DNA of 64,000 bases from Octopus sinensis (lineage: Eukaryota): contig NC_042998.1 of the NCBI RefSeq assembly GCF_006345805.1, positions 35,588,001 through 35,652,000 on the forward strand, written 5' to 3'. The notes beneath the pieces are model-generated. The model was not told the DNA's origin and made no database searches. It saw nothing but the letters and a program-made list of their open reading frames with translations. This document shows, in pieces, positions 24,241 through 51,387 of the stretch. The first letter of the stretch is position 1. The number at the start of each line of letters is the position of its first letter. The position numbers and the translations under genes were made by a program.

Positions 24241-24279
24241 CACACCCAAAACCCTTTCCCTATCAACTTGCTCATTATT

Positions 24280-24755: not shown

Positions 24756-24764
24756 TTCTTCATT

Positions 24765-25934: not shown

Positions 25935-25978
<44 letters not shown>

Positions 25979-26729
25979 GGGCTTCTTTCAATTTCCATTT
26001 ACCAAATCCACACACAAGGCTTTTATTGGTCTGAGGCTATAGCAGAAGACTCTTGGCCAAGGTGTCATGCAGTGGGACTGAACTAGGAACCATGTGGTTG
26101 GTAAGCAAACTTCTTTCCACTCTGCCATGCCTGAGCATCTACACATACATATTGTGTTGAGTCAAAAGTTTTGCAATATTTCTGATAAATTATTTGCTTT
26201 ATAATAATAATAATAATAATAATAATGAGATTATTGTGTATAGTGCTCAGATGCATTACAACTCATCAAAGGTGTATGTACAGTACATAGGATTATGTAG
26301 AAATGTCAGGAAAGTGAACAGTGTAGGAGTCATGATATACATGTATGTGTGCATGCGTATGGAGTGGGGTGAATATCGGGTGTAGTGTTAGCGAATTTCA
26401 GGAAGCATGGAGGTTCATCAAGTTACAACAAAAGCAGTCTAGCATCCAAAGTAGGGTCCATCACATTGCATCGCCTGAAGCGACCTTTCAGTCAATTCTT
26501 TGATTCCCAGGTTGATACCAGTTCTTGTCCATCAAGGTTCCAACTCTTCTTGGTTGATGAAGCATCCCGAGTGCAAGAAGTGAGCCATGGAATGGAACCA
26601 ATAATAATCCGAGGGAGATGGTTTTCCACAACCCTGACAGGCATAAGCAATGGTTAAGGAAAGGCCAGCATCTGGAATCTGTTGCTAAATATGGCGGGGG
26701 GGGGGTTCCGAATGCAAGGGGGTGCGCAG

Positions 26730-26965
26730 CGTCGGATGGAATTATGAAGGGGTGATTCATTATGAGTTTAGTTGAACCATTGATGCCAACCTGTACTCTG
26801 AACAGCTGGAGCAGACATATGCCATTGTGCGGCATTGGTTAACAGAGAGCAAGCTCTTCTATAGCAAGACAACACAAGACCTCAAGGTACCTGGAATAAA
26901 CCCCAGGAATTTGATGGAATTGAACTGATGCTACACCCAACATCTAGTTCAGACCTAGCACCTCA
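26730..26965 (+). pseudogene. Mariner transposase C-terminal fragment
   Basis: GWNYEGVIHYE, TIDANLYSEQLE, QQDN-RP-like and IELMLHPTSSSDLAP motifs. Confidence 0.8.
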
Positions 26966-29369: not shown

Positions 29370-29720
29370 CACAAGAGTTGGCAATTGCAAGCTCCAAGTA
29401 TGTAAGGAGAGGCCCTGTCAAGAATAGTCCATTTAATGTTGGGAAAATCATTTTGATGATCATGGAGTCCCCTGATGAAGTGAGACAGCAAGGTAGAGTT
29501 TCCCTATCCCTGAACCGGAAGGAGTGCATGTGCTGTGTATACCGTGCCTTAAAGTTATTGGTTGTCATACCTGTATAGTGTCTTGTGATGCCATCAGATG
29601 GTGTGAGAGTAGCTCCTTCGACAACAGTCTTTGAGAAGCAATATCCTTTCAGGGGACAGTTGGCAGAATTTTGGCAGTTGCAGATTGGGATGTGGGTCAG
29701 AGCTTAAGTAGGTGTGTATT
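29370..29720 (-). pseudogene. Penelope GIY-YIG endonuclease fragment
   Basis: CNCQNSANCPLKGYCFSKTVVEGATL...HYTGMTTNNFKARYTQHMHSFR matches the PLE cysteine cluster followed by YIG-T--FK-RY--H. Confidence 0.8.
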
Positions 29721-30479
29721 TGTCCTTTGAAGTGATAGTACCTAAGCAGGAGTAGCTGACCCCAGGCATTGTGTGGATTTAAGAATTTGTATCTATGGGT
29801 TCAAGAGAAATGATGCTATAATAGAAAACACTTGCCCAAGGTGCTACGCAGTGAGACTGAACCTGGAACCATGTGGTTGGGAAGCAAGCTTCTTACCACA
29901 CAGCCACATATGTGTATATAAGTTTTTGTGCCTGTCCGCACACGTGTGGATTTGTGTGTGTGTGTGTGTATTTACATTTGTACCTGTACATACATATATG
30001 TGTGCATGTTCCACTTTTGGTTTACCTCCCCACCCACCCCTTCCACAACAAAAGCAACACAATTAACCACTTTCCCAAAACATGCATATGTGTATGTTAA
30101 TGTACCTATATTGAGAATGTGTGGCTGAAAATACACACACACAGACACACACACACACCACACACACACACATGTAAGTACACACAAATTTTTCCTTATT
30201 TGTTTGTTTATTTATTTAGTTACTTATTGAATGGCATAATGGGAAAACTATTTGGAAAATATGAATTATCCCCATGACATTGGAATTCTTTTTATAATTC
30301 ATTCAAGAACTGTCCAGGGAAATAATATTATCGCTGGTATACAAATTCACAACTCCTCAATCAGTAACTAATTGGAAACTCTCAACCTTTGAGTCACTCT
30401 GTTGCTTCAGTTAAATATTAGTAAAAATACATAATATACTCATGCTTTGAATTCTATTTTTCCTATTTGCATCACCAAA

Positions 30480-30514
<35 letters not shown>

Positions 30515-30999
30515 TCGTCATTGTTGTTTAACGTCCACTTTCCATGCTGGCATGGGTTAGATGGTTTGACTGAGGACTGGCAAGCCAGGAGGCTGCACCA
30601 GGCTCCAAATTAATCTGGCAAGGTTTCAACAGCTGGATGCCCTTCCTAACGCCAACCACTCTGAGAGTGTAGTGGGTGCTTTTTATGTGCCACTGATATG
30701 GGAGCCAGTCAGGCGGCACTGGCATCAATTACGCTTAAATGGTGCTTTTTACATGCCACATATTTTAGGAAGTTGACCGTTATGGCTGGTCAGAGAGTGA
30801 CCATTGGTTTCACACCTGAAAAGTGTTTAGTGGTACAGGAACTTATTCATGATGAGTGGTTTTAACCTCATTCAACTGGCCTACAAATACCCTGCAACCA
30901 GGTAACTAAAAGCATCTCAACACCAGGCAAAATTGCAATAAAATTGCTATTTAACTTCGTGGATGAATTTTTTTTTATCCCAACTGGAGTCAACAAGAC

Positions 31000-31200
31000 A
31001 ACAGAAAAATATCTTGGACCTGATGTTAAGAAACCATTTTAGCCACATCCAAAGTATAAACTCTTCTCTCTGACCACGATATGGTACTCCACAATCTTAG
31101 TTTCCAGCACAGCAAAGCCAGTAACTCTCGTCCAGCCACACCCATTTGATAATATCAATCTACACAAAGCAAACTGGGGAACAATCAGATTAAGATCTGT
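31000..31200 (+). pseudogene. LINE apurinic-endonuclease C-terminal remnant
   Basis: RQQKNILDLMLRNHF...SDHDMV...NLHKANW motifs across frameshifts. Confidence 0.5.
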
Positions 31201-31289
31201 CACTTATCTGCTAAGTTGCTTCAATATCAGAGGAAATGTAAGTGAAGGGCCGAGTGATAAGTAACAGATCTTGTCTGATTGTTCCCATT

Positions 31290-33130
31290 GTTCAAAATAC
31301 TCTCCAATGAAACTCACTAGCATAAATAGAAGTCGGCTCCCAAGAGAGAAAGAACAGTGGGGTAAACTGAGCCATAAAAGCAAAAAGATAGGCCTTAAAA
31401 GACTGAAAAATGATGGCAGCAGAGAATTGTATCAGGTGACCAGAAGAGAAGCTAAGAGACGGGTTTACAGAGCAAAGTGGGAAGCAGAAAGTAAGAGATC
31501 CTACAGTATGAGAATCGGAGGAATGAGGGTGTTCCGATTGCAAGACATCAAAGAGAATTGAGGTGTGGATGAGAAGCATGTGCAGACAATCATCATCATC
31601 ATCATTTAACGTCCGCTTTCCATGCTAGCATGGGTTGGACGATTTGACTGAGGTCTGGCGAACCAAACTCCAATCTGATCTGGCAGAGTTTCTACAGCTG
31701 GATGCCCTTCCTAACGCCAACCACTCCGAGAGTGTAGTGGGTGCTTTTACATGCCACCGGCATGAGGGCCAGTTTGGTGGTACTGGCAACGGCCACACCC
31801 AAATGGTGGTTTTTATGTGCCACCTGCACAGGACCCAGTCCAGCGGCACTGGCGACGACCTCACTCAAATGTTTCACGTGCCACCAGCACAAGTGCTAGT
31901 AAGGCAACGTGGTAACAATCACGCTTGAATGGTGTGTTTAATGTGCCATCGGCATGAAGCATGGAAGTGTTTCTATAAAAAGCTGTTAAACATTGCGAAT
32001 ACTTGGGAGAAAGAAGGTTTTTCTAGTGTAGATCCAACAGCGGGACCAGTAATCCAAATTGATACCAGGATGATAGATAAAGCAATCAAGGATATGCAGA
32101 CAGGTAAAGCTCCTGGTTCGTTAGGAATCACTGCTGAGATGCTTAAAATATCTGTCGGAGTAAGATACAGCCTTGTCACCTGTATAGCCAATTAGGTTGT
32201 ACAGAGAGGTGTCATACCCAATGACTGGTGTAGCAGCATTACAGTTAGCTGTTACATGCGTAAGGGAGATGCCTCAGACAAAAGTAATCACAGAAGTATC
32301 AAATTGCTGGACCAGCTCAAGAAATTTACAGAAATTTATAGCTCAATTAATTAGGAACAGAATTAGCCAAGATGAGATGTAATCTGGTTTTGTGCCAGAG
32401 CGAAATGCTACTGATGCCATATTTCTAGTAAGACAACTGCAAGAGAAGTACCCAGCTAAAGCCATTGTACTTGGCATTCGTCAGCCTGAAGAAAGCCTTC
32501 AATAGAGTCCATCAGTCCATGATCTGGCAGTTTCTGAGGAAGCTAGGACTAGATGAATGGCTTGCTAGAGCCATGCAAGCCATATACTGGGACACTGTCG
32601 GTAAAATGAGAGTCGGCCACAATATAACAACAAATTTAGTGTACAGGTAGGAGTTCACCAGAGCTCAGTTCTCAGTCCACTCTTATTTATCATAGTCCTC
32701 CAGGCCACAACAGAGGAATTTAAGTAGGACTGCACTAGGGAGCTACTATATGCTGATAACTTCATTCTTAGCAGAATTTGTATCAGAATTGGAAGAGAAA
32801 TTCCAGGTGTGAAAGCAAAACCTGGAATCAAAAGACTTTGAAGTTAACCTAGCAAGGACAAAAATTGTAATTAGCAAGAAAATGGACAGGACTCTCTTCC
32901 TGATAGGTAAATGGCTTTGCTCAATATGTACGACAGGTGTAGGCAAGAATTCCATCCAATGTACTTAGTGTAAGTTATGGCCATATAAGAGGTGCAGTGG
33001 AATCACAGGTAGGTTGATAGAGAAAGTAGTCTTTGTGTGTGTGGCAGATGTGCAAGAGCAATAAACACTAGGGACACACAGGAAATGCTCAGGAGATTCC
33101 CTAGAGGTATTAGTTTCTATTATCTAGATG
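31290..33130 (+). pseudogene. Degenerate RTE-clade LINE reverse transcriptase, interrupted by an insert at about 31590-31935
   Basis: Contains GKAPGSLGITAEMLK, IPNDWCSS, GFVPERNATDAIFLVRQLQEKY, LAFVSLKKAFNRV, QSSVLSPLLFIIVL and LLYADN, with stops and frameshifts. Confidence 0.9.
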
Positions 33131-34867
33131 GCTGAAATTCGATGACAGGCACGAGCACCATACGAGCGTGATTGTTGACAGAGCGGCTAACCGGCTTCCA
33201 TGCCAGTGGCACATAAAAGCACCATTTGAGTGTGATCGTTACCAGTGTCGCCTTACTGGCACTTGTTCCCCGTGCTAGTAGGGTGCTAAGAGCACCATCC
33301 GAGCGTGATCGTTGCCAGAGCGGCTAACTGGCTTCCATGCGGATCATTACCAGCATCGCCTTACTGGCACCTGTGTCAGTGGCATGTGTAAAAAAGATTC
33401 AAGCGAGGTCATTGCCAGTACCACCTGACTGGCCCCCATGCCGGTGGCACATAAAAAGCACCCACTACACTCTCAGAGTGGTTGGCGTTAGGAAGGGCAT
33501 CCAGCTGTAGAAACTCTGCCAGATCAAGATTGGAGCCTGGTGCAACCATCTGGTTCGCCAGCCCTCAGTTAAAATCATCCAACCCATGCTAGCATGGAAA
33601 GCGGACGTTAAACAATGATGATGAGGAGGAGGAGGAGGACATTCTGAAAGTAATGTTGCTACAATGAGAATAGGGTAGAGAAAGTTCAGAGAGCCATTAC
33701 CTCTGGTAACAAAAGTGTCTCTCTCTCTCTCAAAGTGAAAGGCAGAATGTATCATGATTATATATAGACAGATATACTACATGGTAGTGTGAGACATGAG
33801 ACCTGAATGCAATGGACATGTGAAGACTAGAGAGGAATTAAGGTAGTACTGTATTTATGCATGCTGTACATAGCTGGGTCCTACTTTCAATTTGCCTACA
33901 TCAAGCATTCCCTTCCACATCTCATCGTCCTACCACCCATCCCTATATCACTCAACTAATCAGCTACTGTAATCACTCGAAGGGCAGAAAGACTAAAGTA
34001 TGATGGGACAAAGGTAGGGACCTCATAATGGAGGAGATACATGGTTAGCCAACATTATGAAGGGGTGGTTGAGAGTAGGATAAAGAGAATGATGACAGGG
34101 TGTCATGGTACGAGAAGGGGGGTATAAGGGAGGGTATAGACTGTGTATGAGGAGGGAAGGAGAAGGCGGGTTATTTCATAAGAGTGGGGGAGGAGAGTGA
34201 CAGATGGGGTTAGAGATGGGAAGGGATGGTCAGAGATATATTTAGGTAAGTGAGGTGAGAATGGTGGGTGGGGGCATAAATAGTAGATGTGAGAGGGTGT
34301 TGAGAACAGGAGCAGAAAAGGGGAGAGGTTAAAGATGAAGTATGTCAGCCCTAAAATGTATCTTGGAAGGGAAAGAGATTACTGAAGGCACAGGAAAGAG
34401 CTGATTGATGGGAAATAGTATGGATGGGATGATGATAGGGGTGAATAACTGGTAGTGCTCGAGTGATTACGCAATCATGAGTGCAACACCCTAAACACTA
34501 AACCATATATATATATATATATATATATGGCAAATGGAAGATGGAATATAAGAGAATTTATTATTAATCGCGATAGCTGTTTCGATGCATCTAGCATTGA
34601 TTCCGTATGGGTGGGACACTCAACAACTGGTTCAGGGGCATCCGGTGGTGCAGATGTATCTCGTCGGGTGATAAATAAATAAATACAACTCGTTAAAATG
34701 ACTGTTCCGCAATGTAACTTTCCGTTTTTTTAGAGAGAGGAGCAGTCAGACAGAGGAAATATCTTCATCTATATAGAAGATCAAAAATAAAATCACAGAT
34801 GACAAAAAGAGAAATGAACACACAATCCAGCGAGAAAAGTATTAAAAATAACCATTAACAAATATGT

Positions 34868-35098
34868 GTTTCTTTATTGCCACAAGGGGCTAAACATAGA
34901 GGGGACAAACAAGGACAGACAAATGGATTAAGTCGATTACATCAACCCCAGTGCGTAACTGGTACTTAATTTATCGACCCCGAAAGGATAAAAGGCAAAG
35001 TCGACCTCAGCGGAATTTGAACTCAGAACGCAATGACAGACGCAATACCGCTAAGCATTTCGCCCGGTGTGTTAACGATTCTGCCAGCTCGCCGCCTT
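34868..35098 (-). mobile_element. tRNA-derived SINE family A, representative copy (others at about 68-245, 1437-1656, 22535-22745, 28670-29035, 37068-37298, 38115-38342, 49775-49990)
   Basis: GGCGGCGAGCTGGCAGAATCGTT...GAGTTCAAATTCC head and GCCTTTCATCCTTTCGGGGTCGATAAATTAAGTACC core, resembling the MetaSINE central domain as I recall it. Confidence 0.9.
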
Positions 35099-35349
35099 AT
35101 CGTTAACAAATATGGATGTATAAACGCCCTCGGTCAAGCTGTATGGCGCGAGTACACTCGTTCATACGAGCATCCGCAAAAATGTGTGCATACGCACACG
35201 TGAGGTTTGGTGCACTCATGATCACAAAGCGAGTTAGCTGCCAACTTGATGTTTGCAAGAATGTGGAGGTTAAAAGTAAACTTAATTCATCAATACCTGA
35301 AAGTAAATTACATTAACGGTTACTCAAAATTCATTCTCACATAAGTGAT

Positions 35350-35870
35350 GCAACAGTATTACAAGAAGGTTAACAGAGAAAGTAGTCTTTGTATGTGGCA
35401 GATGTGCAGGTACACGAAACACTAGGAATGTACAGAAAACATGACTCCCTCAAATGTCCAATGGGTATCCCTAGAAGTAGCAGACAGTTTCTGTTACTAA
35501 GGCCATCAAGTTAGCAGTGGAGGTGGTAGTTTTAAAAGTGTTACTGCTAAAATAAGGACAGGCTGGCCAAAGTTCAAAGAGCCTTTCTCTCAGAGTGAAA
35601 GGTATGATGTCTATGTACTGACAGCTCTGCTACATGGCAGTGAGACATGGGCTGCGAATGTAGAGGACATGCGAAGGCTTGAAAGAAAGCAAGCCAGCAT
35701 TGCTCCATTGGATGGGTGATGTGAGTGTGCACGTACGACAGAGTGTAAGTGATTTAAGAGAAAAGCTGGGTATTCTGAGGTATCAGGTAATGTGTGCAAG
35801 AGAGAAGAGACTGTGCTGGTGTGGCCATGTGGTGTGTATTGGATGAGGATAGCTGCAATAAAAAGTGATG
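35350..35870 (+). pseudogene. C-terminal RTE LINE fragment, probable continuation of the element at 31290
   Basis: TALLHGSETWAANVEDMRRLERKQASMLHWM and CVQEKRL-type motifs. Confidence 0.75.
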
Positions 35871-36499
35871 GCACATAAAAAGCACCCATTTCACTCTCAG
35901 AGTGGTTGGCATTAGGAAGGGCATCTAGATGTAGAAACCTTGCCAGATCAGATTGGAGTCTGGTGCAGCCCTCAGGCTCGCCAGCCCTCAGTCCAACCCA
36001 TGCCTGCATGGAAAGCAGATGTTAAATGATCATCATCATCATCATCATCGTTTAACGTCCGTTTTTTCCATGCTAGCATGGGTTGGACGGTTCAACTGGG
36101 GTCTGGGAAGCCAGAAGGCTGCACCAGGCCCAGTCTGATCTGGCAGTGTTTCTACAGCTGGATGCCCTTCCTAACGCCAACCACTCTGTGAGTGTAGTGG
36201 GTGCTTTTTACATGCCACCTGGACAGGTGCCAGACGAGGCTGGCAAACGGCCACAATAGGATGGTGTTTTTTACGTGCCACCGGCACAACAGTTTGACTC
36301 AGTTCTATGTGACTGACAATATCAGAGGCTTGTAGAGCCAATGTATCTCATCAGGTATCATCATTATTCAACATCCGTTTTCCATGTTGGCATGGGTTGG
36401 ACGGTTTGGCAGGAGCTGGCAAGGCTGGAGAACTGCCTGGATTCCGTACTCTGATTTGGCATGGTTTCTGTGGCTGGATGCTCTTCCTAGAGTGAACTG

Positions 36500-36930
36500 G
36501 GTATTTTTTATGTGGCACCAGCATGGCAGGTTTTATGTGACACCAACAAGGGCACTTTTACATGGCACCTTTATGTAACACCAGCACGGATGCTTTTATG
36601 TGGAACCAGCATGGGCACCTTTATATGGCACCAGCATTAGCACTCTTACGTGGAACCAGCATGAGCACCTTTATGTGGCACCAGCATGGGTACTTTTTTA
36701 CGTGGCACAAGTATGGGTGCTTTTACGTGGCACCAGCATTAACAATCTTACGTGACACCAGCATGGGCACCTTCACATGGCACCAACACGGGCACTTTTA
36801 TGTGGCACCAGCATGAGCACTTTTGTGTGGCACCTTTACGTGAGACCAGCATGGGCACTTTTAGGTGACACCAGCATGGGCGCTTTTAGGTAGAACTGGT
36901 ACCAACACTTTTACATGGCACCAGCATCTA
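36500..36930. repeat. Minisatellite of ~20-40-nt GTGGCACCAGCATGGGCACTTTTAT units
   Basis: Imperfect tandem units; the reverse-oriented counterpart is at about 4420-4810. Confidence 0.85.
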
Positions 36931-37902
36931 AATGGAAAAAGGTTCATTCAACAAACCTAAGGAACTATCAAACTGTTACTAAATTATATATAATGGCTGG
37001 CTGGCTTGATGGATGGAAGGATGGATGGATGGATGGATGGAGGGAGGGATTGGTGGTTGGATGGATGGTTGGCGAGCTGGCAGAAACTTTAGCACGCCGG
37101 GCAAAATGTTTAGCAGTATTTCGTCTGCCGCTACGTTCTGAGTTCAAATTCCGCCGAGGTCAACTTTGCCTTTCATCCTTTCGGGGTCGATTAAATAAGT
37201 ACCAGTTACGCACTGGGATCGATATAATCAACTTAATCCGTTTGTCTGTCCTTGTTTGTCCCTTCTGTGTTTAGCCCCTTGTGGGTAGTAAAGAAATAGG
37301 TTGGCTTGATGGATGGGTGGATACTTGTAGCCAGATACCCCTTAACAAATATCATAGTCTGTAAAAAGTACATAATTTCAAGTTAAGAATAAACTGACAA
37401 ATACTTAAAGTATGTTGTTTTTAATGCTGTCAATTATGAGTCACAATGTGTCATAAAGTACCATTGGTGTATGACCATATGGAAGGCTAAGTGGATAGAT
37501 ATAAAGTGGCCTGCTATTCAACTAATAACATAGCCTTTAAGTGGTTGTTAAACCTGCTAGAAACAACAGCTAAATCTGACTCAAATCATTCTCTACCACC
37601 TTAAAAAATATAGATACTCATTATAATACTGTGTGTGGAAACCTATTCCAAAAATCGGATGATTATGGCTTGTATGTCTTTTGGCCAATCTGAATGGACT
37701 TGGAGTAAAATAACACAACAGGTTGTCTGTTAGTCATTACCTTAGCTCGTGATGCACAGATGTTGCTGATTTGGTAACAACAGCTAGTTTTACGTGCAAC
37801 AATTTCACTAATTGTTGGGAAGAAATGTTAGATTATCTGGGAGTTTTAGCTGCAAAAGATCTGAATCCTATCCAGAAGGTTTTAACCTTTATTCATTTAA
37901 AT

Positions 37903-38655
37903 CAGGGGTGGGGAAACTTTAGAGTGGCAGGGAAAAATTTCCAAAGTAAAAGGGCCATAGGTGGACCACAAGTTCTAACTCTTATATATATCTATGTATA
38001 ATTTGATATACATCAGTTTAACACATTAAATTAATGCATAACATCTTCATTAACGCCGCCACTGAATTTAGGATGTTTATATTACCTAAGAGGTATTCTA
38101 TATTTTTCAGGTGTCAAGCTGGCAGAGTCGTTAGAACACTGGGCGAAATGCTTTGCGTTATTTCGTCTGCTGCTACGTTCTGAGTTCAAATTCCGCCGAG
38201 GTCGACTTTGCCTTTCATCCTTTCGGGGTCGATTAAATAAGTACCAGTTACGCACTGGGGTCGATATAATCGACTTAATCCGTTTGTCTGTCCTTCTATG
38301 TCTTCTCTGTGTTTAGCCCCTCTGTGAGTAGTAAAGAAATAGGTATTCTATATTTTTCAGCTAGAGTGTGGTTGAGTCTCAAGAGGGTGGTACAAACCTA
38401 GCAATATGTGTTTTATAGTGAAAACAAAATTTCCATTCAAATGGTAATTACCGGACGAGTTTCTGTTCGAGTCTGACTGGTTTAAGTTGTAGTGGAAACA
38501 TGACCAATGTTGCAAATAGGAATAAGAGTATTCTATAAATTTCACAATTGGAAAACTTACTATATTTTGTACATACAAGTACATCAGCTTACAGGTGCAA
38601 TAAAATGGGCTCGCAGGCACAATTGTGCCCGTGGGCAGGGATTTTCCCACCCCTG
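37903..38655. mobile_element. hAT-like MITE with a nested SINE (about 38115-38342)
   Basis: Termini CAGGGGTGGGGAAA / TTTCCCACCCCTG; TSD is imperfect. Confidence 0.6.
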
Positions 38656-40756
38656 ATTTTAAATTCATGAAACATGAATAAGCAGCCAACTCAAGAAGTA
38701 CCTTTGGATCACAGGGTGACATGCCGTGCTTGAGGAGACCTACTGAGTCAAGTACATCAACATCAAAATGAAATCAAATCACAATCAAATGGAAATTGTA
38801 GTTGTGGTTCCCATGCTGGTGGCCCCTGTGCCAGTGACACATAAAAAAAGTACCTACTACACTCTCAGAGTGGTTGGCGTTAGAAAAGGAATCCAGCTGT
38901 AGAAACCTTGCCGGATCAGAGTGGAGCATGGTGCAGCCTTCTGGCTTGCCAATCCTCAGTCAAACCGTCAAACCCATGCCAGCATCAAAAACAGATGTTA
39001 AACAACAACAATTATGATGATGGGCTTCTATCAGTTTCCATTTACCAAATCCACTCACAAGGATTCGGTCAGCCCGAGGCTAGAGTAGAAGACACTTGCC
39101 CAAGGTGCCACGCAGTGGGACTGAACCAGGAACTATGTGGTTGGTAAGCAAGGTACCACACAGCCACTTCTGTGCCTATAGATGAGTTAAAATATCTTAG
39201 AGGAGTATTCTACATACTGAATACAAATATGGTCAGGTCAAACGTATGTAATACAGTAAATTGAAGAACTTCCATCACACCTGTACAGGTGTGTAAAAAT
39301 TTTGAAAAAAAACATTGCAGTAAATAATTGTCAGATGTTTTCTTTTTGATGTTTTTGTATCATTTCTTTTAGTTTTATTATTTTAACAGAAGAAAAATTT
39401 CTTTTACTCAATAAAAAAAATTTTAAACATTTTTTCCTAATCACATGGTTTCTGGTTCAGCCCCGCTATGTGGCACCTTGGGCAAGTGTCTTCTACTATA
39501 ACCTTGGACCAACCAAAGCCTTGTCAGTGGATATGATGGAGAGAAACTGAAAGAAGCCCGTCGTATGTGTGTGTGAGTATCTTTACATCTAAGTTTGTCT
39601 TCCATCACCACTTGGCAACTGTTGTTGGTTTGTTTACATCCTTGTAACTTACTAGTTTGGCAAAAGAGAACAACAGAATAAATACTAGGATTTAAAAAAA
39701 GAACGCCCTGGAGTCGATTCATTCAACTAAAAATGTCTTTCAAGTTGGTGCCCCAGCATGGGCGCTATCAAATGACTGAAGTTAATACAATATGAAAGAA
39801 AAGATGTAATTAATGAGTGTCTCTGAAAGAATACACATAGAAAAAAAACCAGGGTTGAAATAAAAAAATAATAATTTCCAACCCATGCCAGCATGGAAAA
39901 CGGACGTTAAACGATGCTGATGATGAAGGATCAGTGCAAGACTTGGAATTCTACCAGGTTTTGCTTAGTCATGTTCCACTTTCAGTATGGTCTTTTATTT
40001 GCTTAGTTTCAGTCACTTGACTGCAGCCATGATGGAGCACCACCTTTAGTTGAACAAATCGACCCTGAGACTTATTCTTTGTTAAGCCTAGTACTTATTC
40101 TATTGGTCTCTTTTGCCAAACCGCTAAGTTACGGGGACATCAACAAACCAACATCAATTGTCAAGCAATGGTGCAGGGGGGAGGAGGTAAACACACACAC
40201 ACACACATACATAAATATATAACAGGCTTCTTTCAGTTTCCATCTGCCAAATCAACCCACAAGGCTTTGGCCAGCCCGAGACTACAGTAGAAGACACTTG
40301 CCCAAGGTGCCATGCAATGGGACTGAACCTGGAACCAGGTGGTTGGTAAACAAGCTTCTTACCACACAGCCACACCTATGCCTATACATATATGAGGGGC
40401 TTCTTTCAGTTTCCATCTACCAAATCCCCTCATAAGGCTTTGGTCAGCCTGAGGCTATAACAGAAGAAGAGGCTATAGCAGAAGAAGAGGCTATAGCCCA
40501 AGATGCCATGCAGTGGGACTGAATCTGGAACCATGTGGTTGGGAAGCAAGCTACTTACCACACAGCCATGTCTGTGCCTCACACAAATTATTTTAGAAAT
40601 TATATATTTTTGCACATGGTTCTGGGTTCAGTCCCACTGCATGGCACCTTGGGCAAGTGTCGTCTACTATAGCCTTGGGTTGACCAAAGCCTTGTGAGTG
40701 GATTTGGTAGACAGAAACTGAAAGAAGCCCGTAGTATATGTATGTATGTATGTATG

Positions 40757-40832
<76 letters not shown>

Positions 40833-43537
40833 CTGTCCCCCTAACATCGCTTGACAACCAATGCTGGTGTGTCTATGTCGCCGTAACTTAGCAGTTCAGC
40901 AAAAGAGACCGATAGAATAAGTACTAGGCTTACAAAAAAATAAGTCCTGGAGTCGATTTGCTTGACTAAAGGCAGTGCTCCAGCATGGTCACAGTCAAAT
41001 GACTGAAACAAGTAAAGAAAAAAAGAGTATATTCTGAAGAATCAGAGTTTCAGATGTTGAAAAGATACAGCTGAAAACTTTTCAAAAGACAACCAAAATT
41101 GCAAAGAAATGGAATAAAATGGGGCAAAGATACCCCGCACCCCACCCTTTTTTTTTTTTTTTTTCAGAATCACCCTGTGCGATTCTTAAAAGAATCGCAC
41201 CCAAAAAATTTATTGCCTTCGGTGCTCCAGATAATTTCAAATTTTACGCATATTCTCTAGAAAAGTTATGAGTAGGGCTTAAGATTAATTAAATATTTTA
41301 ATGAAATTTCAGAAACAGTGGATGAGGGGGAGGGCATTTGTTAATGTTAAACGTTTTAAAGATCAGACGAAACACTGTTTTCCTAAATAGCTCTCTAATT
41401 TAAAAGTACTCCCAGCAGAGACCAACCATTTATATGCAAGTGTACTTGTGTGAGTGAGTGTGTGTGTATGTGTGTGTGTGTTCATGCATGTTTAATTAGT
41501 TTAATGTTCTCTCCAACTTTAGGACGGTTTCTTCAAAATTTCTTTTTCACGTAAAAAGCACCATCCGAACGTGGCCAATGCCAGCGCCGCCTTGACTGGC
41601 TTCCGTGCCGGTGGCACGTAAAAAGCACCAACAGATCGTGGCCGTTGCCAGCCTCCCCTGGCACGTAAAAAGCACCCACTACACTCACGGAGTGGTTGGC
41701 ATTAAGAAGGGCATCCAGCTGTAGAAACACTGCCAGATCAGACCGGAGCCTGGTGCAGCCTCCTGGCTTCCCAGACCCCGGTCGAACCGTCCAACCCATG
41801 CTAGCATGGAAAACGGACATTAAACGATGATGATGATGAATGCATATACACTTGTCTGCAATGGAAGCAGCTTGGCTGTTTAACAATTAGTGGTCAGAGA
41901 CAAACCGAATGCTAAAAGTTGACCAAAAACTTTCGAAACAACAAATTCTTGATAGAAACTTCCAGATCAAGTGATTTTGTCTTTTTTCTTTTCTTTCTTT
42001 TTTTTTTTTTTTTGAGGAAGTGTAATCGTTAAATTTTTTTAATTCCTCTTAAACTATACAACAATGAACAACAAAATTTAAATCTGATTCAATCACACGG
42101 TCAACGAAAAGCAGGTGAAATACTGTTAATTGACAAAATGAAAGTGGATTGCTGACTTCAAAGATTGCCTTTTTTGGCACACAAAAAGTCTGTCTCTGAT
42201 TTGTTTCCTCATAACTTTCGTGGATGTTTTCTGGTGAAATTTTCTACACATTCGCTTCAGATGGCATAAATTCCAACAACAACAGAATTTGTCTTGAAAA
42301 ATTTATTCCGAGGGTGGGAAGAGGAGTTTCAAAAAATTCATACGAATCGGTTTTGTTTCTTCGTAACGTCCGGGAAAATGGTGTTTTTGTTTGTTTGTTT
42401 TTGTTTTCTTTTTCTTTTTAATCTTCTAGAAATACCTTTTTCAGAATGTGTAAGGTTACGATGCAAAAAGAAAAATGATGAGCACGACACGTATATACTG
42501 ACATCATAATTTTTGTCGTAATTTCAAATTTCTTTTTGTAGATATATGTAATATGTGAATGTGAACGAGCAGATCGATTTTTTTTTGTTGTTTTTTTTTT
42601 TTTTTTTCACCTTAAATTCTGATATAATCGTAATCTACACCATCCGAAACGTATTTATAGAAAATTTCATTAAAAAATATCAAATTTTCTGGAAGTTATT
42701 AAGAAACAAAGCTGACACATGTGAATTTTCCGAAACTCCTCTTTCCACCACTGGAAAATTTTTCTCACAACAAATTCCGATGCAATCGGAATCTACATCA
42801 CCTGAAGCATGTTCGCAGAAAATTTCTTCTAAACAAAATCCATTTTTCTTTAGGTTATGAGGAAACAAAGTCAAGGGGCACACCTTTGTAGGAAATAAAA
42901 ATCCCAGAATTTAACCTTCGAAACAGAAAATAAGGTGACTAATATCTCTGCAAATGCAAAAATACGCATTCCGATAGAATGGAATGGCAAATTATTTAGT
43001 TCACATCTTCAGATGTCTGTTTTAAATGTCATAGATGAGTCTGCAAAAAAATGTTGTAAGGGATAGGAGGGGGTTTATTGCCTCACCTCCACCCCCAGTC
43101 TCTCATAATTTTGGAGTTTTGACAATCCCTCCCTCCACCCCAACTATTTTAGATTGATGCTTTAAAACATTCGACATATTTTAAAGAATCAGAGCTGAAA
43201 AGTTTTTTCTAAAGACAAACAAAACTGAAAAGAAATAAAAAGGACGTTTGTTTTGGTTGTTTTTTTTTTTCTTTCTTATTCTTTTTTCTCGGAATTATGA
43301 TTTCCGATTCTTAAAACCTACACACCCAAACAATTTATTGCTGGTATGGGTGGGTGACTGTCATACAGCTCCACCTTATTGCCTCTGGTGGTGTTCTTGA
43401 TAATTTCCGATTCTATGTATATTCTCTGGAAAAAAACGGTAAAGAATACGCACACCGCCTGTTTTCGGCGTTACCTTAAACACCGAGTGTGCGTATTCTT
43501 CAAAACCTTCGCCGGGTTTGAAGTTAATTAATTACAT

Positions 43538-43738
43538 CAGTGGTTTTCAACCGGGGTTCCGCCAGTACAGTCCAGGGGTTCCGCAAGAAGTTACAAAAGT
43601 GCTAAAATCGGCAGTAATTTTTAATTCTCCTATGCAGATATGTGTGCATAAAACTATTAAATTATTGCACAGGGGTTCTCCGAGCCAGTGGAATGTTTCC
43701 TTGGGGTTCCGCTCCAGCAAAAAGTTTGAAAAGCACTG
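43538..43738. mobile_element. hAT-type MITE
   Basis: TIRs CAGTGGTTTTCAAC / TTTGAAAAGCACTG; 8-bp TSD AATTACAT / AATTATAT. Confidence 0.8.
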
Positions 43739-44627
43739 AATTATATTAATATAAAACTTCAGAATGTTTTTATTTTTTATTTTTGTAATTTTAATTTGTT
43801 TCAAACTGCAGTTTATCTGTAAATGTTAAACGTTATAAACATCGGGCAATACACTATTTTTTCCCCTCTCTATTTTAAAAGTCCTCCCAGCAATGACCAA
43901 CCATTTATAGATGTGTGTGTGTATGTACCAATATCCATAGATACACACGAAAAATCCATAAACATGAAAGATCCGCGATCGAGCTGAGTAGTGAAACATG
44001 CTCACACACGCTCAAGTACGTCCACCCATTATTGCTTGTCCTGTCCATGAGCGAATTGAACAGTCGAACACACACTCGCACATACATATAAATATATATA
44101 TTATCAATAATAATAATAAAGGGTAAAATTAATTAATTAGTAATTGATAATTCTACCAAGCAGTGTTCAGCACGTTAAAAGGACCATTTACGGTAAACTT
44201 AAACATTACTTTATATAATTATGAGTATAATTATAATTAGGGTTCAGCAAAAATAAATGGCAAAAATTTGCTTTGCCACATACCGAACTTTTAGAAATAG
44301 CAGCCAAAGAACTTAGCTATTTCTTCTACTATAAGAAGGATCTCCCAGACAATGTATACTCAAAAAAATTGTTTTTGGGTTAGGGTTCCCTCTTATAGTA
44401 GAAGAAATAGCTAAGTTCTTTGGCTGCTATTTCTAAAAGTTTGGTATGTGGCAAAGCAAATTTATTTTTGCTGAACCCTAATTATAATTATGCTCATAAT
44501 TATATAAAGTAATGTATAAATACATATATATATCTTTTTTGTTTTCAAGAATCGCTTATGTTTATGTATTTTTTGTGTATCTACGTGTTTATGTGTGTGT
44601 GTATGTACATATGTATACTTGTGGTTA

Positions 44628-44979
44628 ACTAGTAGCGAACAGTGGTCCCGGAGCGCGCACTCGCGCTAGCTAGTCGTAAGTAGTCGACCCTACAACGACT
44701 TGCGCGTATGTTTGTATTTCAAGGGTGAATACATATCAAAGAAAATTAAATAATATTTTTCGAACAAAGTAAATAAAACGCAAAGTGAATAATTTTTAAA
44801 ACTAAGTACATAAATTATTTTTATAAACAAACTAAGGTTAGGGTTAGGTTTAGGGGTTAAAAAATTAGGTCTAGGGTTAGGATTAGGTTTAGGGGTTAAA
44901 AAGTCGTAGGATCGACTACATACGACTAGCTAGCGCGGATGCGCGAGTGCGCGCACCAGGACCACTGTTCGCTAGTAGT
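44628..44979. mobile_element. MITE with long GC-rich TIRs and internal telomere-like repeats
   Basis: About 70-bp imperfect TIRs (ACTAGTAGCGAACAGTGGTCC... / ...GGACCACTGTTCGCTAGTAGT); TTAGGG/TTAGG variants at 44836-44900. Confidence 0.8.
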
Positions 44980-45197
44980 ACCTATTTGTGTAAGTATATG
45001 TTTATGTAAAAGCGGCCAACTTATTTTCCATTTTAAAAAGTTTGCTTTCGAGTGGAAAACAAAGTGAAAGTCGACTACTGGATTCAAAGTTTGCTTTTTT
45101 ATAAATATATATATAACAATTGCAGCGTGGAAGGTGTTTGTAAGCCATTTAAGAAACACACAAAAGCCGTTCGATTCACTTCAACATTTAAGTTTAA

Positions 45198-45247
45198 TTT
45201 GTCAAAATATTTTCGTCGCTAAAATCCGCGACCTGTTCACTGACAAA
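45198..45247 (-). ncRNA. Candidate type I hammerhead with G3:C8-swapped core
   Basis: TTTGTCA-GTGAACA-G-GTCGC(GGATTTTA)GCGAC-GAAA-ATATTT-TGACAAA: 7-bp stem I, 5-bp stem II, palindromic stem III, core GUGAACA in place of CUGANGA. Confidence 0.45.
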
Positions 45248-46178
45248 AATCCGTGCTGCATCTCTCAGATCAAATTACTTGCTATGCGAGTACATCTCCG
45301 TAATATATATATATATTATATATTATTTTTTTATTTTTTTTACTGTTTGTAAATATTAAAAACAAAGATAGCGAGAGAGTAAACAAATATGCGTAAAAAG
45401 TGATGCAGCTACGACTGAAAGTGTCTGCATCTTAACTCGCACCTGTTTATTATTATTATTAGGTAACTGACTACAGTCCCCACTACACTGCGACAAGTTT
45501 CATTGATGAATTAATCAATTATAATAAGGACTTTGTGGAAGATACAGACACAAATCTTTTCACAATAGGGAGTAGTATATTCAATAGACAAAACCAGCCA
45601 AATCGGGTTACCCAGATTATAAGTCAACTTTAAGCAGCAGTTGTACGAATATATTAATTTTTTAAGCAAGCGATAAGCCCAGAATTAATAATACACACAC
45701 ATATACAAAAATGGGGGGGAGACATCCCGCTTTTTGGTTATCTTACAACATTTAGCGGGAATATAAATGATTTCGGATGGTATATCTACACAAGTGTACC
45801 CCATGTGTAGTCGTGTACCCCCTATTTTTGTGATGATAGGTTGAGTACATACAACCTATGCGCAAAGGGCTCGAGCCATACATGTCCTATCTTATTTAAA
45901 AACAGTGTTTTAAACAACATTATCCGTTAGGTTTTCATTTCTATTTATTTTATTCATTTATTCATTAACTGAGACGGAAAGGTATAAACTGAAGGAAATT
46001 TGGCTGCTATTTCCAGCAGATAGAGCGACCACATAAAGGAAGCTTCGTTGACTCGCCTTTAAGTAGTAAATAAAATATATTACAAATAATTCATTACGCG
46101 TTGGTTATATACAGACTTACTTTAAGGGGGGGGGAATTTTTAGGGGTTTTATAAAAATGGAAAAAAAGACCGTTTTAC

Positions 46179-46597
46179 CTTTTGTGTAAGGCTTTCTCCA
46201 GTTCATACTCCGTAACGTAAACCTTCTCCAGTTTGGCCGTGTTTATGCTTCTTGTAGACGTATCATTCCCATCAATATCAACACCATTTGCGCAGAGTTC
46301 CACACCAAGGAGACCCTTCGCATTGGTGGACACTTGGAAAGTGTAATCACCAAGCTCCCTCTTCCTGGTAATTGACTGCAGAGTATCTGGAGATTTGCTG
46401 TCTGAAGTTTTCAAAAGAGTTTCAATGCTGGAGGCCAGGGGTTCGAGTCGGTAGTCGGCCTGCCAGAAATGTTTCTTTTTATGTTTGATAACAATATTGT
46501 ACAACTTAATTTTCTGTGCTTCGTCGATACTCGGAGTGGCATGAAGAGTGTCCCTTCCGAGTTCATTCACAATTTTAGAAATGGTAGCTGAAAACAT
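46179..46597 (-). CDS. GSDME: Gasdermin (GSDME/pejvakin-like), first coding exon encoding about 140 aa of the N-terminal pore-forming domain; partial gene
   Basis: MFSATISKIVNELGRDTLHATPSIDEAQKIKLYNIVIKHKKKHFWQADYRLEPLASSIETLL aligns without major gaps to the GSDME/PJVK N-terminus as I recall it (MFAKATRNFLREV..LIAVSNLNDSDKLQLLSLVTKKKRFWCWQ / MFAAATKSFVKQVG..LVPVPSLSEADK). KLEKVYVTEYELEKALHKR matches GTLRKQEVDLQQLIRDSAER. The frame ends at AG|GTAAAA (phase-2 donor, GT at 46178-46177). An acceptor TTCTGCAG| sits 26 nt upstream of the ATG. Family assignment is strong; exact orthology is not established. Confidence 0.85.
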
Positions 46598-46774
46598 ATT
46601 TGTAGTGGTGAGCCTCTAAACAACTGCAGAAATGAGAATCGTTTTGAAAACAAAAGAATATTTCAGCTTCTGGTGCGACTTGTCACTTTCTTGTTATAAT
46701 CCGTTACAAACTGAGAATCTCGACAACTCTAAGAATTTTCCTTTTTTCTCTCTTTCTATTTTTTTTTTTTTTAC

Positions 46775-46880
46775 CTTCAGACCAAAAAGTGGGCTTTCAT
46801 AAATATATTTAAATGAGTGAGTTTAGATTGTTTGTGTTTGTTGGTTTATAACTGTTCATTGTAATTCGATGCCTTGAGCT
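46775..46880 (-). other. Probable 5'UTR exon of the gasdermin gene (5' end uncertain)
   Basis: Minus-strand donor CTGAAG|GTAAAA (GT at 46774-46773) would give a ~151-nt intron ending at the TTCTGCAG acceptor at 46624. Confidence 0.4.
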
Positions 46881-47752
46881 TAGTGTTAGCACGTCTGTGA
46901 TTATACTCTGCTCATGACACAATGCAAGGTGCTTGTACTATAAGCGTGTGCGTGAGTGTGTGTGTCTATGTGTGAGTGGATGTGTTTTTGCTTAAGTCAC
47001 TTCTCCAACTGAAAGTTAAAGATCGTTAATGAACAGTCCAGCTCACACGAGTTCAGCTGTCAAAGCAGTCGCCTTCTGGGCTTATTATTTATTGCGTGAA
47101 GCTTATTATAACAATAATAAAAAAAACTTGATTATCTTAAACGATACCTATACCTCCTTACAACATCTATGGAAGTCAAATGGCATCACAAACGTTTATA
47201 TTATATATTTATTTTATTTGCTTTTCAAAGTCATTTACCAAGAAATTTTCAAAGTGCAACCTGCCTTATCCTCTCACACTTCTCTCTCGTCTTCTCCACT
47301 TCTCCCTTCCTCTCTTATTCTCTCTCATCTCTCTCTCTCCCTCTCTTTTTCTCTAGCTATCTCTTCTTCGTTCTCCACTTTTTCTCTTTTCACTCTTTTC
47401 TTTTTTTCTTGTTTAGTCTCTGTCCTTCCCTTTTATTATTCCTTTCTGTCTTTCGCCTTTTTTTTTCATTTTCCCTCAGTTTTTTTTTTCTCCGTTTTTT
47501 TTTCTCTTTATTCCACATCGTTGCCTTCCTTTATTCCTCTCCTTCTCTTTCCTTCTCTCTCTTTCTCAATTATTCAGTCTCTGACGCCCAACATTTCATT
47601 TCTTTGTCACTTTCCTTTGCATACCACTAACTCAATGATCTCTCTCTCTCCCTCTCTCCCGGTCGCTCCCTCCCTATCGTCCTCTTGCTCCCACTCTTTC
47701 GATTCTATCTTTGTATAAACATCCTTTTTATTACCTCAGTGTCAATTTACTT

Positions 47753-47796
<44 letters not shown>

Positions 47797-47989
47797 CCCT
47801 TGATATATATATCCTATGTCTTTCTCTCTCTCTCTAAATATATATATATAAGTACCCTTATGTCTTTCTCTCTCTCTCTCTCTCTCTCTCCTTCTCTCTC
47901 TCTCTCTCTAAATATATTCTGTATATCTCTCTCTAAATAATGTCTCTCTGTCCCTTAATCTCTGCTCTCTCTCTCTCTCTCCTCTCCTC

Positions 47990-48058
<69 letters not shown>

Positions 48059-48286
48059 AATGTCTGTCTCTCTCTCTCTCCTCTCTCTCTCTCTATATAT
48101 ATTATGTATATACTGTCCCTTAATGTCTCTCTCGCTCTTTCTATATATATATTATATAGATAATATATATACTCGCGCTGAGATTTATCATTATATATAA
48201 TAAGAGATAATATAATATTACTTAATGTCTTTCTCTTTTTCTCTTCTCTCTCTCTCTCTCTCTATAATATATATATATATATATAT

Positions 48287-48324
<38 letters not shown>

Positions 48325-49366
48325 AGAAAGACATTAAGGAATATTTATCTCTTATTATAATATAATGATAAATCTCAGAGCGAGTATATAATATATATAT
48401 ATATATCCGTAATAATGAAGGTGGAATTAATTAATTTGGAATAATTATCAATTACACACAGTAGTCTTCGGCATGTAAAAGCCTCATTCGAGGAAAATTT
48501 AAGTAATACTAATGCAATAAGGGTTTAGCAACGAATTGCCTACCACATACCGAATTTAGAAATAGCAGTCAAAGGTTATAGCTATTTACTTCTACTAAAA
48601 GGGAGATCTCAGTAAAAGCAAGCAATTGGAAGGCTGACACAAACAGGTAAGAGAGAATGAATTAACTGCAATCTATCAAACATTTTTAAAGTTATCTACG
48701 GACGTACGTTTTCGAAATCAAATTTTTAGGAAAGCATAAGAATTAAATATTAAATTATTACGGATAACCATATTTTATCTCAGTAGATGACCACAGCATC
48801 TTTTTTGGCTACACGCGGGTGGGAAGGGGCTGTTGACACAATCGTTTCATTCCACAATTTGAATTCGGTGATACTAGTTTGCGGATTCTAGCTCGCTCTG
48901 ATACTGAGTTGAGTTGGTGCCCCTAGTATCTCAAAATTCAATATATAATCATTTATGATTTAGTATTCTACGCTGAAGAGAAAAGAAAGTTTCGGTAAGA
49001 TAGAATTATTTAATATTTAATATTTAATTCTTATGCTTTCCTAAAACTTGATTTCGAAACGTACGTCCGTAGATAACTTTAAAAATGTTTGATAGATTGC
49101 AGTTAATTCATTCTCTCTTACCTGTTTGTGTCAGCCTTCCCATTGCTGTTTTACTGAGATCTCCCTTTTTAGTAGAAGAAATAGCTATAACCTTGACTGC
49201 TATTTCTAAATTCGGTATGTGTAAGGCAATTCGTTGCTAAACCCTTTTGCTTAGTATTACTTTATATATATAATATATATATATATATAAAAGAGAGAGA
49301 GAGACATTAAGGGACATATACATAATATATATTTTAGAGAGAGAGAGAGAGAGAGAAAGACATTAA

Positions 49367-49439
<73 letters not shown>

Positions 49440-50408
49440 TTAAGGGACTTATATATATATATTTATATCCCTAATCTCTCTTTTTCTCCTGACTCTCTCT
49501 ATCTTTCTTCTCCCCTCTTTCTAATTCTCTGTCTCCCTATCCATCTTCTTCCCCATCTCTCTCTCTGTTTTTTTATTAACCATCTCTCCTGCCACTCACA
49601 ATAACTGAACTGCGACTTAATGACGAAGCCCCTTTTTAAAAGCGGCTTTCTGACTGACATTAACTGTTACGGGCTTCCTGCTGCTGCTGTTTGTGCTGGG
49701 TGTTGTCTCATTAAGGATTTTGTACGATAATAGTTGAAGTGGAAGAAGTATCCATAGCTATAATTCTTATTTATTTATTGCCCACAAGGGGCTAAACATA
49801 GAGGGGACAAACAAGGACAGACAAAGGGATCAAGTCGATTGTATCGACCCCAGTGCGTAACTGGTACTTAATTTATCGACCCCGAAAGGATGAAAGGCAA
49901 AGTTGACCTCGGCGGAATTTGAACTCAGAACGTAACGGCAGACGAAATACGGCTACGCATTTCGCCCGGCGTGCTAACGATTCTGCCAGCTCGAGCTATA
50001 ATTCTGGGACACCCTCGCCATCGCCCGTGGTAATGCTGCGAGCGTGCTGGCTTACTTCAGTGGGTTCTATTAAACCCCTGGTGTGCGACCGGGGGGTTGG
50101 CAAAATATAGCTGACAGGGAAAATCCAGTCATTGGCCCCGTTTCATCGGGCCCATAAGATGTATTGAACTTGTGATGGTGCATTTGTTTTGCATATCTTT
50201 TTTTTAATTAGGGAACAATAAAATGTAATATCAAAATATACAACCTGTGCTAGTGCCTTGTAAAAAGCTCCTGTAAAGTGGTTGGCATTAGGAAGGGCTT
50301 CCAACTATAGAAACATGCCAAAACAGACAATTGGAGCCTGGTGCAGCTCTCCATCTTGCTAGCTCCTCTCTAACCATCCAACCAATGCCAGGATGGAAAA
50401 CAGACATT

Positions 50409-51387
50409 AACCCTTTTGTTACTGTATTTACTTTGAGATGCTCTATGTTTCTTTCAATTACTTTAAATATAACAAAGAATTTAGTAAAATAACTTAGTTA
50501 TCATTCAGCTAGTGTTAGGAACATAAATTGTGACTAAGATTTGGTGGAAGATTTTCATTCAGAACTTCTGAAAACAAGACATTTGTTCTATAGAACTAGA
50601 GGTGTTTTCAGGCAGGTTGGTATCAAAAGGGTTAAGAATTGTGTCTCAATAATATATTTTAACCCTTTTGTTACCACATTTCTGTTGAGATGCTCAGTGT
50701 TTCTTTCAATTACTTTAAATATAACAAAGAATTTAGTAAAATAACTTAGTTATCATTCAGCTAGTGTTAGGAACATAAATTGTGACTAAGATTTGGTGGA
50801 AGATTTTCATTCAAAACTTCTGAAAACAAGACATTTGTTCTAGAACTAGAGGTGTTTTCAGGCAGGTTGGTATCAAAAGGGTAAGAATTGTGTCTCAATA
50901 ATATTTTTAACCTTTTGTTACCACATTTCTTTTGAGATGCTCATGTTTTCTTTCAATTACTTTAAATATAACAAAGAATTTAGTAAAATAACTTAGTTAT
51001 CATTCAGCTAGTGTTAGGAACATAAATTGTGACTAAGATTTGGTGGAAGATTTTCATTCAGAACTTTTGAAAACAAGACATTTGTTCTACAGAGCTAGAG
51101 GTGGTTTCAGGCAGGTTGCTATCAAAAGGGTTAAGAATTGTGTCTCAATAATATATTTTAACCCTTTTGTTACCACATTTCTGTTGAGATGCTCAATGTT
51201 TCTTTCTATTAATTTTAAATATAACAAAGAATTTAGTAAAATAACTTAGTTATCATTCAGCTAGTGTTAGGAACATAAATTGTGACTAAGGTTTGGGGGA
51301 AGATTTTAATTCAAAACTTACGGAAACAAGACATTTGTACTCAGAGCCAGAGCTGGTTTCAGCCGGGTTGGTAACGAAAGGGTTAAA
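50409..51387 (-). mobile_element. Tandem array of four ~230-bp piggyBac-like MITEs
   Basis: Each unit runs TTAA-CCCTTT...AAAGGG-TTAA and units are separated by a ~23-nt spacer, GAATTGTGTCTCAATAATAT(A)TT. Confidence 0.85.

Follow-up and report, generated by a model that had tools for sequence, protein, structure and literature searches.

The Locus and Its First Coding Exon

The window, which is the whole stretch of 64,000 nucleotides analysed here, carries a repeat-rich part of the Octopus sinensis genome. Its positions 1..56597 are 100% identical, in reverse orientation, to the locus of a gasdermin gene on O. sinensis CM016860.1 (GCA_006345805.1). This gene is LOC115232596 (product XP_029658425.1), a single-copy member of the GSDME/PJVK clade. 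The minus-strand segment that starts at 46597 and ends at 46179 is almost certainly the first coding exon of this gasdermin gene, which is of the GSDME type. The features of the window are collected in Table 1.

Table 1. Positions of the gasdermin exon and of neighbouring features in the window.
Feature	Position	Strand	Remarks
Exon 1 of LOC115232596, coding part	46179..46597	-	ATG at 46597, last exonic base 46179; 419 nt; exact spliced solution
Intron 1, donor GT	46177..46178	-	CAAAAG/gtaaaacg; phase 2, within the AGG codon of Arg140
5' UTR of exon 1, minimum extent	46598..46646	-	Colinear with the 5' UTR of an orthologous octopod mRNA contig
Intron 1, first 46.2 kb of 48,043 bp	1..46176	-	Repeat-rich; no other exon of the gasdermin gene
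CT-rich low-complexity tract	47029-48331 and 49369-49437		Plus-strand Ser/Leu/Phe ORFs; several dinucleotide microsatellites (TA, TC, AG); 0.4-3 kb upstream of exon 1
1,157-bp unit in tandem	9302-11613 (9302-10458 and 10457-11613)		Within intron 1; copies 98.5% identical
252-bp tandem array	50407-51386		Upstream of exon 1; 3.9 copies, 93%
Copies related to the 252-bp array	2780-3257		Others elsewhere in the gene introns
ORFs with shared repeat peptide, examples	4602-5012, 9690-10022, 11679-12098, 19862-20203, 35611-36009, 41533-41886	both	
361-aa ORF	59798-60883	-	Pro/Ser-rich; longest ORF of the window
120-aa ORF	62685-63047	-	Matches the Pif1 helicase 2B domain (PF21530, 33.5 bits)

The minus-strand ORF at 46175..46597 encodes 140 amino acids followed by a TAA stop, exactly as first described. 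Its 3' end reads CAC AAA AGG TAA; the last exonic bases are the AG at 46180-46179, after which the genomic sequence continues with GTAAAA. This junction (AG/GTAAAA) is consensus-like and reads as a good donor, with a predicted exon end at 46179. The exon encodes residues 1-139 together with two bases of the Arg140 codon. The length of the ORF is weak evidence, because 31 ORFs of the window reach at least 110 amino acids, mostly within dispersed repeats or low-complexity DNA. The ORF is judged to be real on account of homology, namely a 100% match to a 464-residue protein, the existence of octopod orthologues, and purifying selection.

An exhaustive phmmer search of 1.84 billion representative sequences revealed that the ORF is 100% identical to residues 1-140 of this 464-residue protein (P0001), a computational gene model deposited in RefSeq as “uncharacterized protein LOC115232596 [Octopus sinensis]”. 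Orthologues from O. bimaculoides and O. vulgaris fall in the cluster of P0001 and bear the UniProt name “Gasdermin pore forming domain-containing protein”. The exon ORF exhibits 77-95% identity to the other octopod orthologues, and about 15 further matches, at 28-40% identity, all begin at their own residue 1. Three proteins returned by the same search (P0002, P0009, and P0017) were rejected as spurious, being repetitive or unrelated proteins matched over short stretches. To note, the O. vulgaris protein CAI9718629.1 (483 residues) is an isoform that departs from the 464-residue form in its very last residues, which are followed by a 19-residue extension, and nowhere else; the N-terminal exon is unaffected.

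Other searches with the exon alone were less productive. A Pfam scan of the 140 residues returned no gasdermin match, only a sub-threshold match to a viral coat protein, and phmmer against PDB sequences returned nothing meaningful. A word-indexed protein search returned no match and thus missed a protein of its own collection that is identical over the whole 140-residue query and that was retrieved by the exhaustive search. A negative result from a word-indexed protein search is therefore weak evidence in the case of eukaryotic exons. The same tool returned five proteins with the full-length protein as query and nine with a 13-sequence profile, no vertebrate gasdermin being among them. Exact look-up of the 140-residue ORF as a called gene, and of a Tubulanus protein, found no record.

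Gene Structure, Transcription, and Selection

Exactly one combination of GT and AG sites reproduces the 464-residue protein. It consists of seven coding exons and six introns, all canonical GT-AG, with intron lengths of 48,043, 6,823, 6,181, 2,962, 1,282, and 6,271 bp and phases 2-0-1-0-0-0. The gene spans ~73 kb and exon 1 is the only coding exon inside the window. Exon 2 begins with G/TAT, its G completing the AGG codon of Arg140, and is located 1,865 bp past the left edge of the window. A tblastn comparison of the full protein with the window detected no further exon; weak matches at 38061, 30464, and elsewhere (E 0.26-8) were discarded because of stops or the wrong strand. The Argonauta hians orthologue agrees with it in its seven exons and their phases. 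Both octopods have a very large first intron, of 48.0 kb in O. sinensis (L001 10420-58462) and 64.6 kb in Argonauta (L003 2420-67032). The homologous intron of Lingula anatina is 334 bp long, and introns 2-6 of octopus, too, are longer than their counterparts by a factor of 3-20.

Two Logan RNA-seq contigs, L004 (1,511 bp, with 84% identity at the protein level) and L005 (2,812 bp, 56%), harbor an uninterrupted coding sequence of an orthologue, and the gene is transcribed in related cephalopods. Aligned to the O. sinensis genome, L004 splits into seven blocks that stop where the predicted exons end, the first block corresponding to window positions 46646..46179; this junction evidence comes from the transcript of a related octopod and not of O. 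sinensis itself. The phase-2 GT donor inside an Arg codon, proposed in the preliminary description, is upheld both by the unique exact spliced solution and by the end of this first block at 46179. Over the full coding sequence, dN/dS is 0.107 between O. sinensis and Argonauta and 0.194 between O. sinensis and L004, while it ranges from 0.14 to 0.28 over exon 1; these values are incompatible with a decaying relic. Intact and canonically spliced, the gene is under purifying selection.

The 5' end differs from what had been proposed, i.e., an exon starting at 46623 behind an AG acceptor at 46625-46624. The 5' UTR of L004 is colinear with the genome through these two positions up to at least 46646, and it reads CTACAA where O. 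sinensis has CTGCAG, hence without the AG. Conservation between O. sinensis and Argonauta extends ~68 nt upstream of the ATG (to ~46665), and no UTR intron is shown for XP_029658425.1 in the S2 Table of Wang et al. 2023 (PMC10155998). On these three grounds the acceptor was rejected, and the exon is treated as the first of the gene, with a start upstream of 46646. The CT-rich tract and its microsatellites are located further upstream, and the promoter is expected in that region.

Intron Phases and the Age of the Arg Intron

The “pejvakin-like” gene of Lingula anatina (P0010, XP_013387688.1) comprises eight coding exons with phases 1-2-0-1-0-0-0, and all six octopus introns are matched in it in position and phase. 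The phase-2 introns of Lingula and octopus share alignment column 146, and both split an Arg codon as AG/G; the other Lingula introns coincide with those of octopus at columns 198/201, 314/349, 535, 584/585, and 637. The phase-1 intron of Lingula (amino acid 88, column 99) is an extra one, with no counterpart in cephalopods. Since the intron shares column, phase, and codon with that of Lingula, the alignment indicates that the phase-2 intron in Arg is ancient, at least for Lophotrochozoa. The published phases of Lottia (XP_009046123.1), 2-0-1-0-0-0, are identical to those of octopus (PMC10155998).

The relation to the vertebrate genes is illustrated by the same published table. The human GSDME phases are listed as /,1,2,0,1,1,0,1,0, i.e., a UTR intron followed by a phase-1 intron (exon 2/3) and a phase-2 intron (exon 3/4), and the N-domain series of vertebrate GSDME and PJVK is 1-2-0-1 (PMC10155998, S2 Table). 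At matching columns, the N-domain series is 2-0-1 in octopus and 1-2-0-1 in Lingula. In the alignment with PDB sequences, octopus R140 is aligned with human GSDME R135 in DSAER/TINL, and the published phase series is consistent with the human exon 3/4 intron lying at the aligned Arg. An ancient intron shared with human R135 had been suggested: the human motif was given correctly, and the Lingula match and the published phase 2 at exon 3/4 are in line with the suggestion. The suggestion that the upstream vertebrate intron is absent here is confirmed, as this phase-1 intron is found in Lingula and vertebrates and is absent from Octopus, Argonauta, and Lottia.

Family Membership and Fold

Full-length P0001 matches the Pfam Gasdermin family PF04598 with 84.8 bits and an E value of 8.4e-24, against a cut-off of 25 bits; the match aligns residues 1-247 to positions 1-238 of the 240-position profile. 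Seven of the more distant phmmer matches also match PF04598. The Pfam check proposed in the preliminary description hence fails with the exon taken alone and succeeds with the spliced full-length product, and family membership rests on the latter because the 140-residue exon gives no Pfam match. A profile of 13 relatives searched against the PDB ranks human GSDME-N chains at the top (9uxv, 9vlz, 9h5m, and 9pe0, E 2e-54 to 2e-45), with scores decreasing from GSDME-N (189-159 bits) to Trichoplax GSDM (99), GSDMD (62), GSDMA3 (50), and GSDMB (23). The annotated relatives carry the source names “pejvakin-like” or “gasdermin-E-like”. As judged from these comparisons, the closest affinity is to the GSDME/PJVK clade, and not to GSDMA, B, C, or D.

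The AF2 model, computed from the alignment of the relatives, has a mean pLDDT of 73.8 and, with a pTM of 0.45, is of moderate confidence. It displays a helix at residues 2-14, a β-core with two long hairpins whose tips (91-114 and 183-205) are of low confidence, a disordered segment at 250-258 (pLDDT<50), and an all-helical C-terminal half (266-462). Exon 1 accounts for helix α1, the basic/aromatic KHKKKHFW loop, the first long β-hairpin (78-127), and the helix 130-137 of this model. Foldseek against the PDB returned gasdermins for all of its top 29 matches, with E values down to 2e-13. They include full-length GSDMA3, GSDMD, and GSDMB at ~1e-13, and the N-domains of GSDME, GSDMA3, GSDMD, and Trichoplax pore subunits at a TMt of 0.59-0.69. 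The C-terminal half is matched to GSDMD C-terminal domains (6ao3 with a TMt of 0.65, 6kmv, and 5nh1, probability 1.00). Global TM-scores to full-length gasdermins reach only 0.31-0.39, which is due to poorly modelled hairpins and domain packing.

The gasdermin N-domain fold is present in the model. The product has a gasdermin N-terminal domain of the pore-forming type (1-247) and a helical C-terminal domain (~262-464), with a short disordered linker in between. The C-terminal helical domain is, according to the model, of the autoinhibitory type, and autoinhibition is predicted, while the Pfam scan of P0001 returned no Gasdermin_C match for this half. The reading of the exon as a GSDME/pejvakin-like N-terminus, from which the analysis started, is thereby corroborated by the full-length PF04598 match, the PDB profile ranking, the predicted fold, and the names of the relatives, and the AlphaFold/Foldseek check performed on the spliced product gives the same answer.

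Two details of that reading are modified. The segment HKKKHFWQ had been described as divergent; it occupies the same place as VIKxKKRxFWQ in the family consensus and KKKRFWCWQ in human GSDME and is a conserved basic/aromatic motif. On the grounds of established gasdermin structures, we take it to be the basic/aromatic membrane-binding loop. The insert SDSKSPDTLQSIT does correspond to extra residues (6-9 in cephalopods), but it is a variable loop, modelled with low confidence and found in all six cephalopods.

Linker, Cleavage Motif, and Proposed Mechanism

The linker comprises ~10 residues. In O. sinensis and O. bimaculoides, the GGF247 that ends the N-domain is followed by DVVD251, which becomes DVLD in Argonauta and DIPD in two more distant cephalopods. 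The GGF-D-x-x-D arrangement is kept in six cephalopods and aligns, column for column, with FDDVD/FDTVD of two other invertebrate gasdermins. DVVD (248-251) overlaps the segment of pLDDT<50, and DxxD is the sole Asp-containing motif within the disordered linker. Inspection of the linker for a DxxD site, as had been recommended, has thus yielded a putative caspase site at DVVD251, conserved as DxxD in the six cephalopods. The P1' residue is Leu in O. sinensis (DVVD/L) and Ser or Ala in the other cephalopods; caspases favour Gly, Ser, or Ala at this position (cited in PMC10155998), which makes Leu suboptimal. Caspases, including human caspase-3, have been shown experimentally to cleave the DVVD motif of amphioxus GSDME, and DVVD transplanted into human GSDME is also cleaved by human caspase-3 (PMC10155998).

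By analogy with the characterised human, coral, amphioxus, and oyster GSDMEs, the C-terminal domain would keep the full-length protein autoinhibited. Cleavage after Asp251 by an effector caspase of the caspase-3/7 type would free a fragment of ~28 kDa, which would bind acidic membrane lipids via helix α1 and the KHKKKHFW loop, both encoded by exon 1. The N-fragment may then oligomerise and insert two β-hairpins, the first of which (~78-127) is exon 1-encoded, to form a membrane pore, leading to lytic, pyroptosis-like cell death in immune defence. Taken as a whole, a first exon of a GSDME-type gasdermin acting by this standard caspase-gated pore mechanism is, in our analysis, the probable reading of the locus; the Leu at P1' and the very short linker weigh against the mechanism.

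An entirely different explanation, in which the ORF is open by chance, or is a pseudo-exon decaying amid repeats, and the RefSeq model is an annotation artefact, could appeal to the many long ORFs of the window, most of them in repeats, to the failure of the exon alone to match Pfam or the PDB, and to a RefSeq entry that is a computational model named “uncharacterized”. It is refuted by the full-length PF04598 match, the intron positions in common with Lingula, the spliced mRNA contigs with the L004 blocks, and intact orthologues in six cephalopods with a dN/dS of ~0.1-0.2, and retains practically no probability. A more serious alternative accepts a genuine gasdermin that is mainly non-lytic, like vertebrate pejvakin (PJVK) or oyster GSDME in its nuclear/NF-κB signalling. 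The closest annotated non-cephalopod relatives, in Lingula and Tubulanus, are named “pejvakin-like”, maximum-likelihood trees group invertebrate gasdermins with PJVK, and oyster GSDME is linked to histone modification and NF-κB signalling in one report (PMC12122919). Since the basic/aromatic lipid-binding loop and the DxxD linker motif are conserved, however, and lytic activity or activation by caspases is described for the homologues of coral, amphioxus, and oyster, a mainly non-lytic role is regarded as unlikely.

The protein might also be a pore former activated by a protease other than one of the caspase-3/7 type at DVVD251, for example a caspase-1-like, another host, or a pathogen protease acting elsewhere in the segment 250-262. 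The unfavourable Leu at P1' in O. sinensis points in this direction, as do the cleavage of amphioxus GSDME by several caspase types at two sites (PMC10155998), the cleavage of other gasdermins by pathogen proteases, and a new caspase-1 type that interacts with GSDME in oyster. Against it, DxxD is the only Asp-containing linker motif and its position is kept across six cephalopods, and DVVD is cut by human caspase-3 both in amphioxus GSDME and after its transfer into human GSDME (PMC10155998); activation by another protease seems rather unlikely. It is doubtful, and quite improbable on the features at hand, that cephalopods possess a “tight” GSDME in which the ~10-residue linker, the DxxD right after GGF, and the cephalopod-specific loop extension at 64-76 would bring about an activation mode or a protease specificity unlike those of coral, oyster, amphioxus, and vertebrate GSDMEs. 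Nothing in the present evidence points positively beyond a standard GSDME.

Comparison with Known Gasdermins

Vertebrate GSDME/DFNA5 (human NP_001120925.1; pore structures 9h5m, 9vlz, and 9pe0) is the best PDB profile match of the octopus family. Human GSDME and the octopus protein both begin with MF, are built from two domains, and have helix α1, a loop of the KKKRFW type, a GGF that closes the N-domain, and a DxxD motif in the linker; their identity is only ~20-25%. The octopus linker is much shorter than the human one and carries DVVD instead of DMPD. The genes differ as well: that of octopus lacks the vertebrate upstream phase-1 intron, and the phases of its C-terminal half are 0-0-0, as compared to 1-0-1-0 in vertebrates (PMC10155998). 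Cephalopods are further distinguished from vertebrate GSDME by the 6-9 extra residues in loop 64-76, and octopods by a first intron of 48-65 kb.

Lingula anatina XP_013387688.1, Lottia gigantea XP_009046123.1, and Crassostrea gigas CgGSDME share ~25% full-length identity with the octopus protein and the same domain layout. Besides its extra phase-1 intron, the Lingula gene is compact, with 6 kb as compared to 73 kb in octopus. CgGSDME is reported to be activated by CgCaspase-3, and the cleavage tetrapeptides of lophotrochozoan GSDMEs (DTVD, DEVD, and others) differ from that of octopus. On the Lingula contig LFEI02000288.1 (L002 1-677), the “pejvakin-like” gene has the last exon of another gasdermin-like gene as its immediate upstream neighbour. 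This exon is 94% identical to residues 384-451 of the “pejvakin-like” product, hence a tandem duplicate exists in this species.

Amphioxus BbGSDME (Wang et al. 2023, PMC10155998) is an invertebrate GSDME cut by caspases, and one of its sites is DVVD as in the octopus linker. In amphioxus, the lytic fragment results from cleavage at VHTD253, whereas the cut at DVVD304 yields a non-lytic p40 (PMC10155998). The octopus DVVD comes immediately behind the GGF that closes the pore domain, in the position equivalent to the amphioxus lytic cut. Pejvakin (PJVK/DFNB59) belongs to the same GSDME/PJVK clade and possesses a similar N-terminal domain; the exons of its C-terminal inhibitory domain have been lost and no pore formation is known for it, whereas the octopus gene keeps those exons.

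Prior Knowledge and Significance

The gene had been presented as hidden in a repeat desert, but it is annotated in RefSeq and already catalogued: the O. bimaculoides gsdm locus was analysed in the evolutionary study of Angosto-Bazarra et al. 2022, and the S2 Table of Wang et al. 2023 (PMC10155998) lists “Octopus sinensis GSDME XP_029658425.1” with phases 2-0-1-0-0-0, to which the phases derived independently here are identical. Since the one locus was studied in 2022 and the other entry tabulated in 2023, the identification as GSDME is already known; the initial interpretation is supported and the finding is an ordinary one. A single exon in raw sequence sufficed for a divergent immune pore-forming gene to be recognised and a conserved intron to be inferred. 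The biological gain is small, given the RefSeq model, the gasdermin-named UniProt orthologues, and the two papers. Literature searches found no experimental study of gasdermin or pyroptosis function in a cephalopod. If the protein were shown to act in cephalopod haemocytes as a pyroptosis effector gated by a caspase, it would be the first gasdermin of the class with a demonstrated function; functional work in cephalopods would be a routine extension of the coral, oyster, and amphioxus studies.

Repeats and Other Features of the Window

The peptide GSGKPEGCTRLQS..LA.FLQLDALPNANHS is common to ORFs of both strands at many sites of the window. It indicates that these ORFs belong to a highly dispersed SINE-like repeat, which takes up much of intron 1. 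The dispersed-repeat motif is also carried by ORFs in the two copies of the 1,157-bp tandem duplication. Copies related to the 252-bp array are found, besides those of Table 1, at ~53.3 kb and 67 kb of the gene locus sequence (L001).

Upstream of the gasdermin gene, the 120-residue ORF with the Pif1 helicase 2B match is probably the relic of a Pif1-like helicase gene of the Helitron type. The 361-residue ORF lies in the sole GC-rich patch of the window (60-62 kb, GC 0.50, strong GC skew). It has no Pfam match, and its C-terminal part presumably resembles a retroelement endonuclease module.
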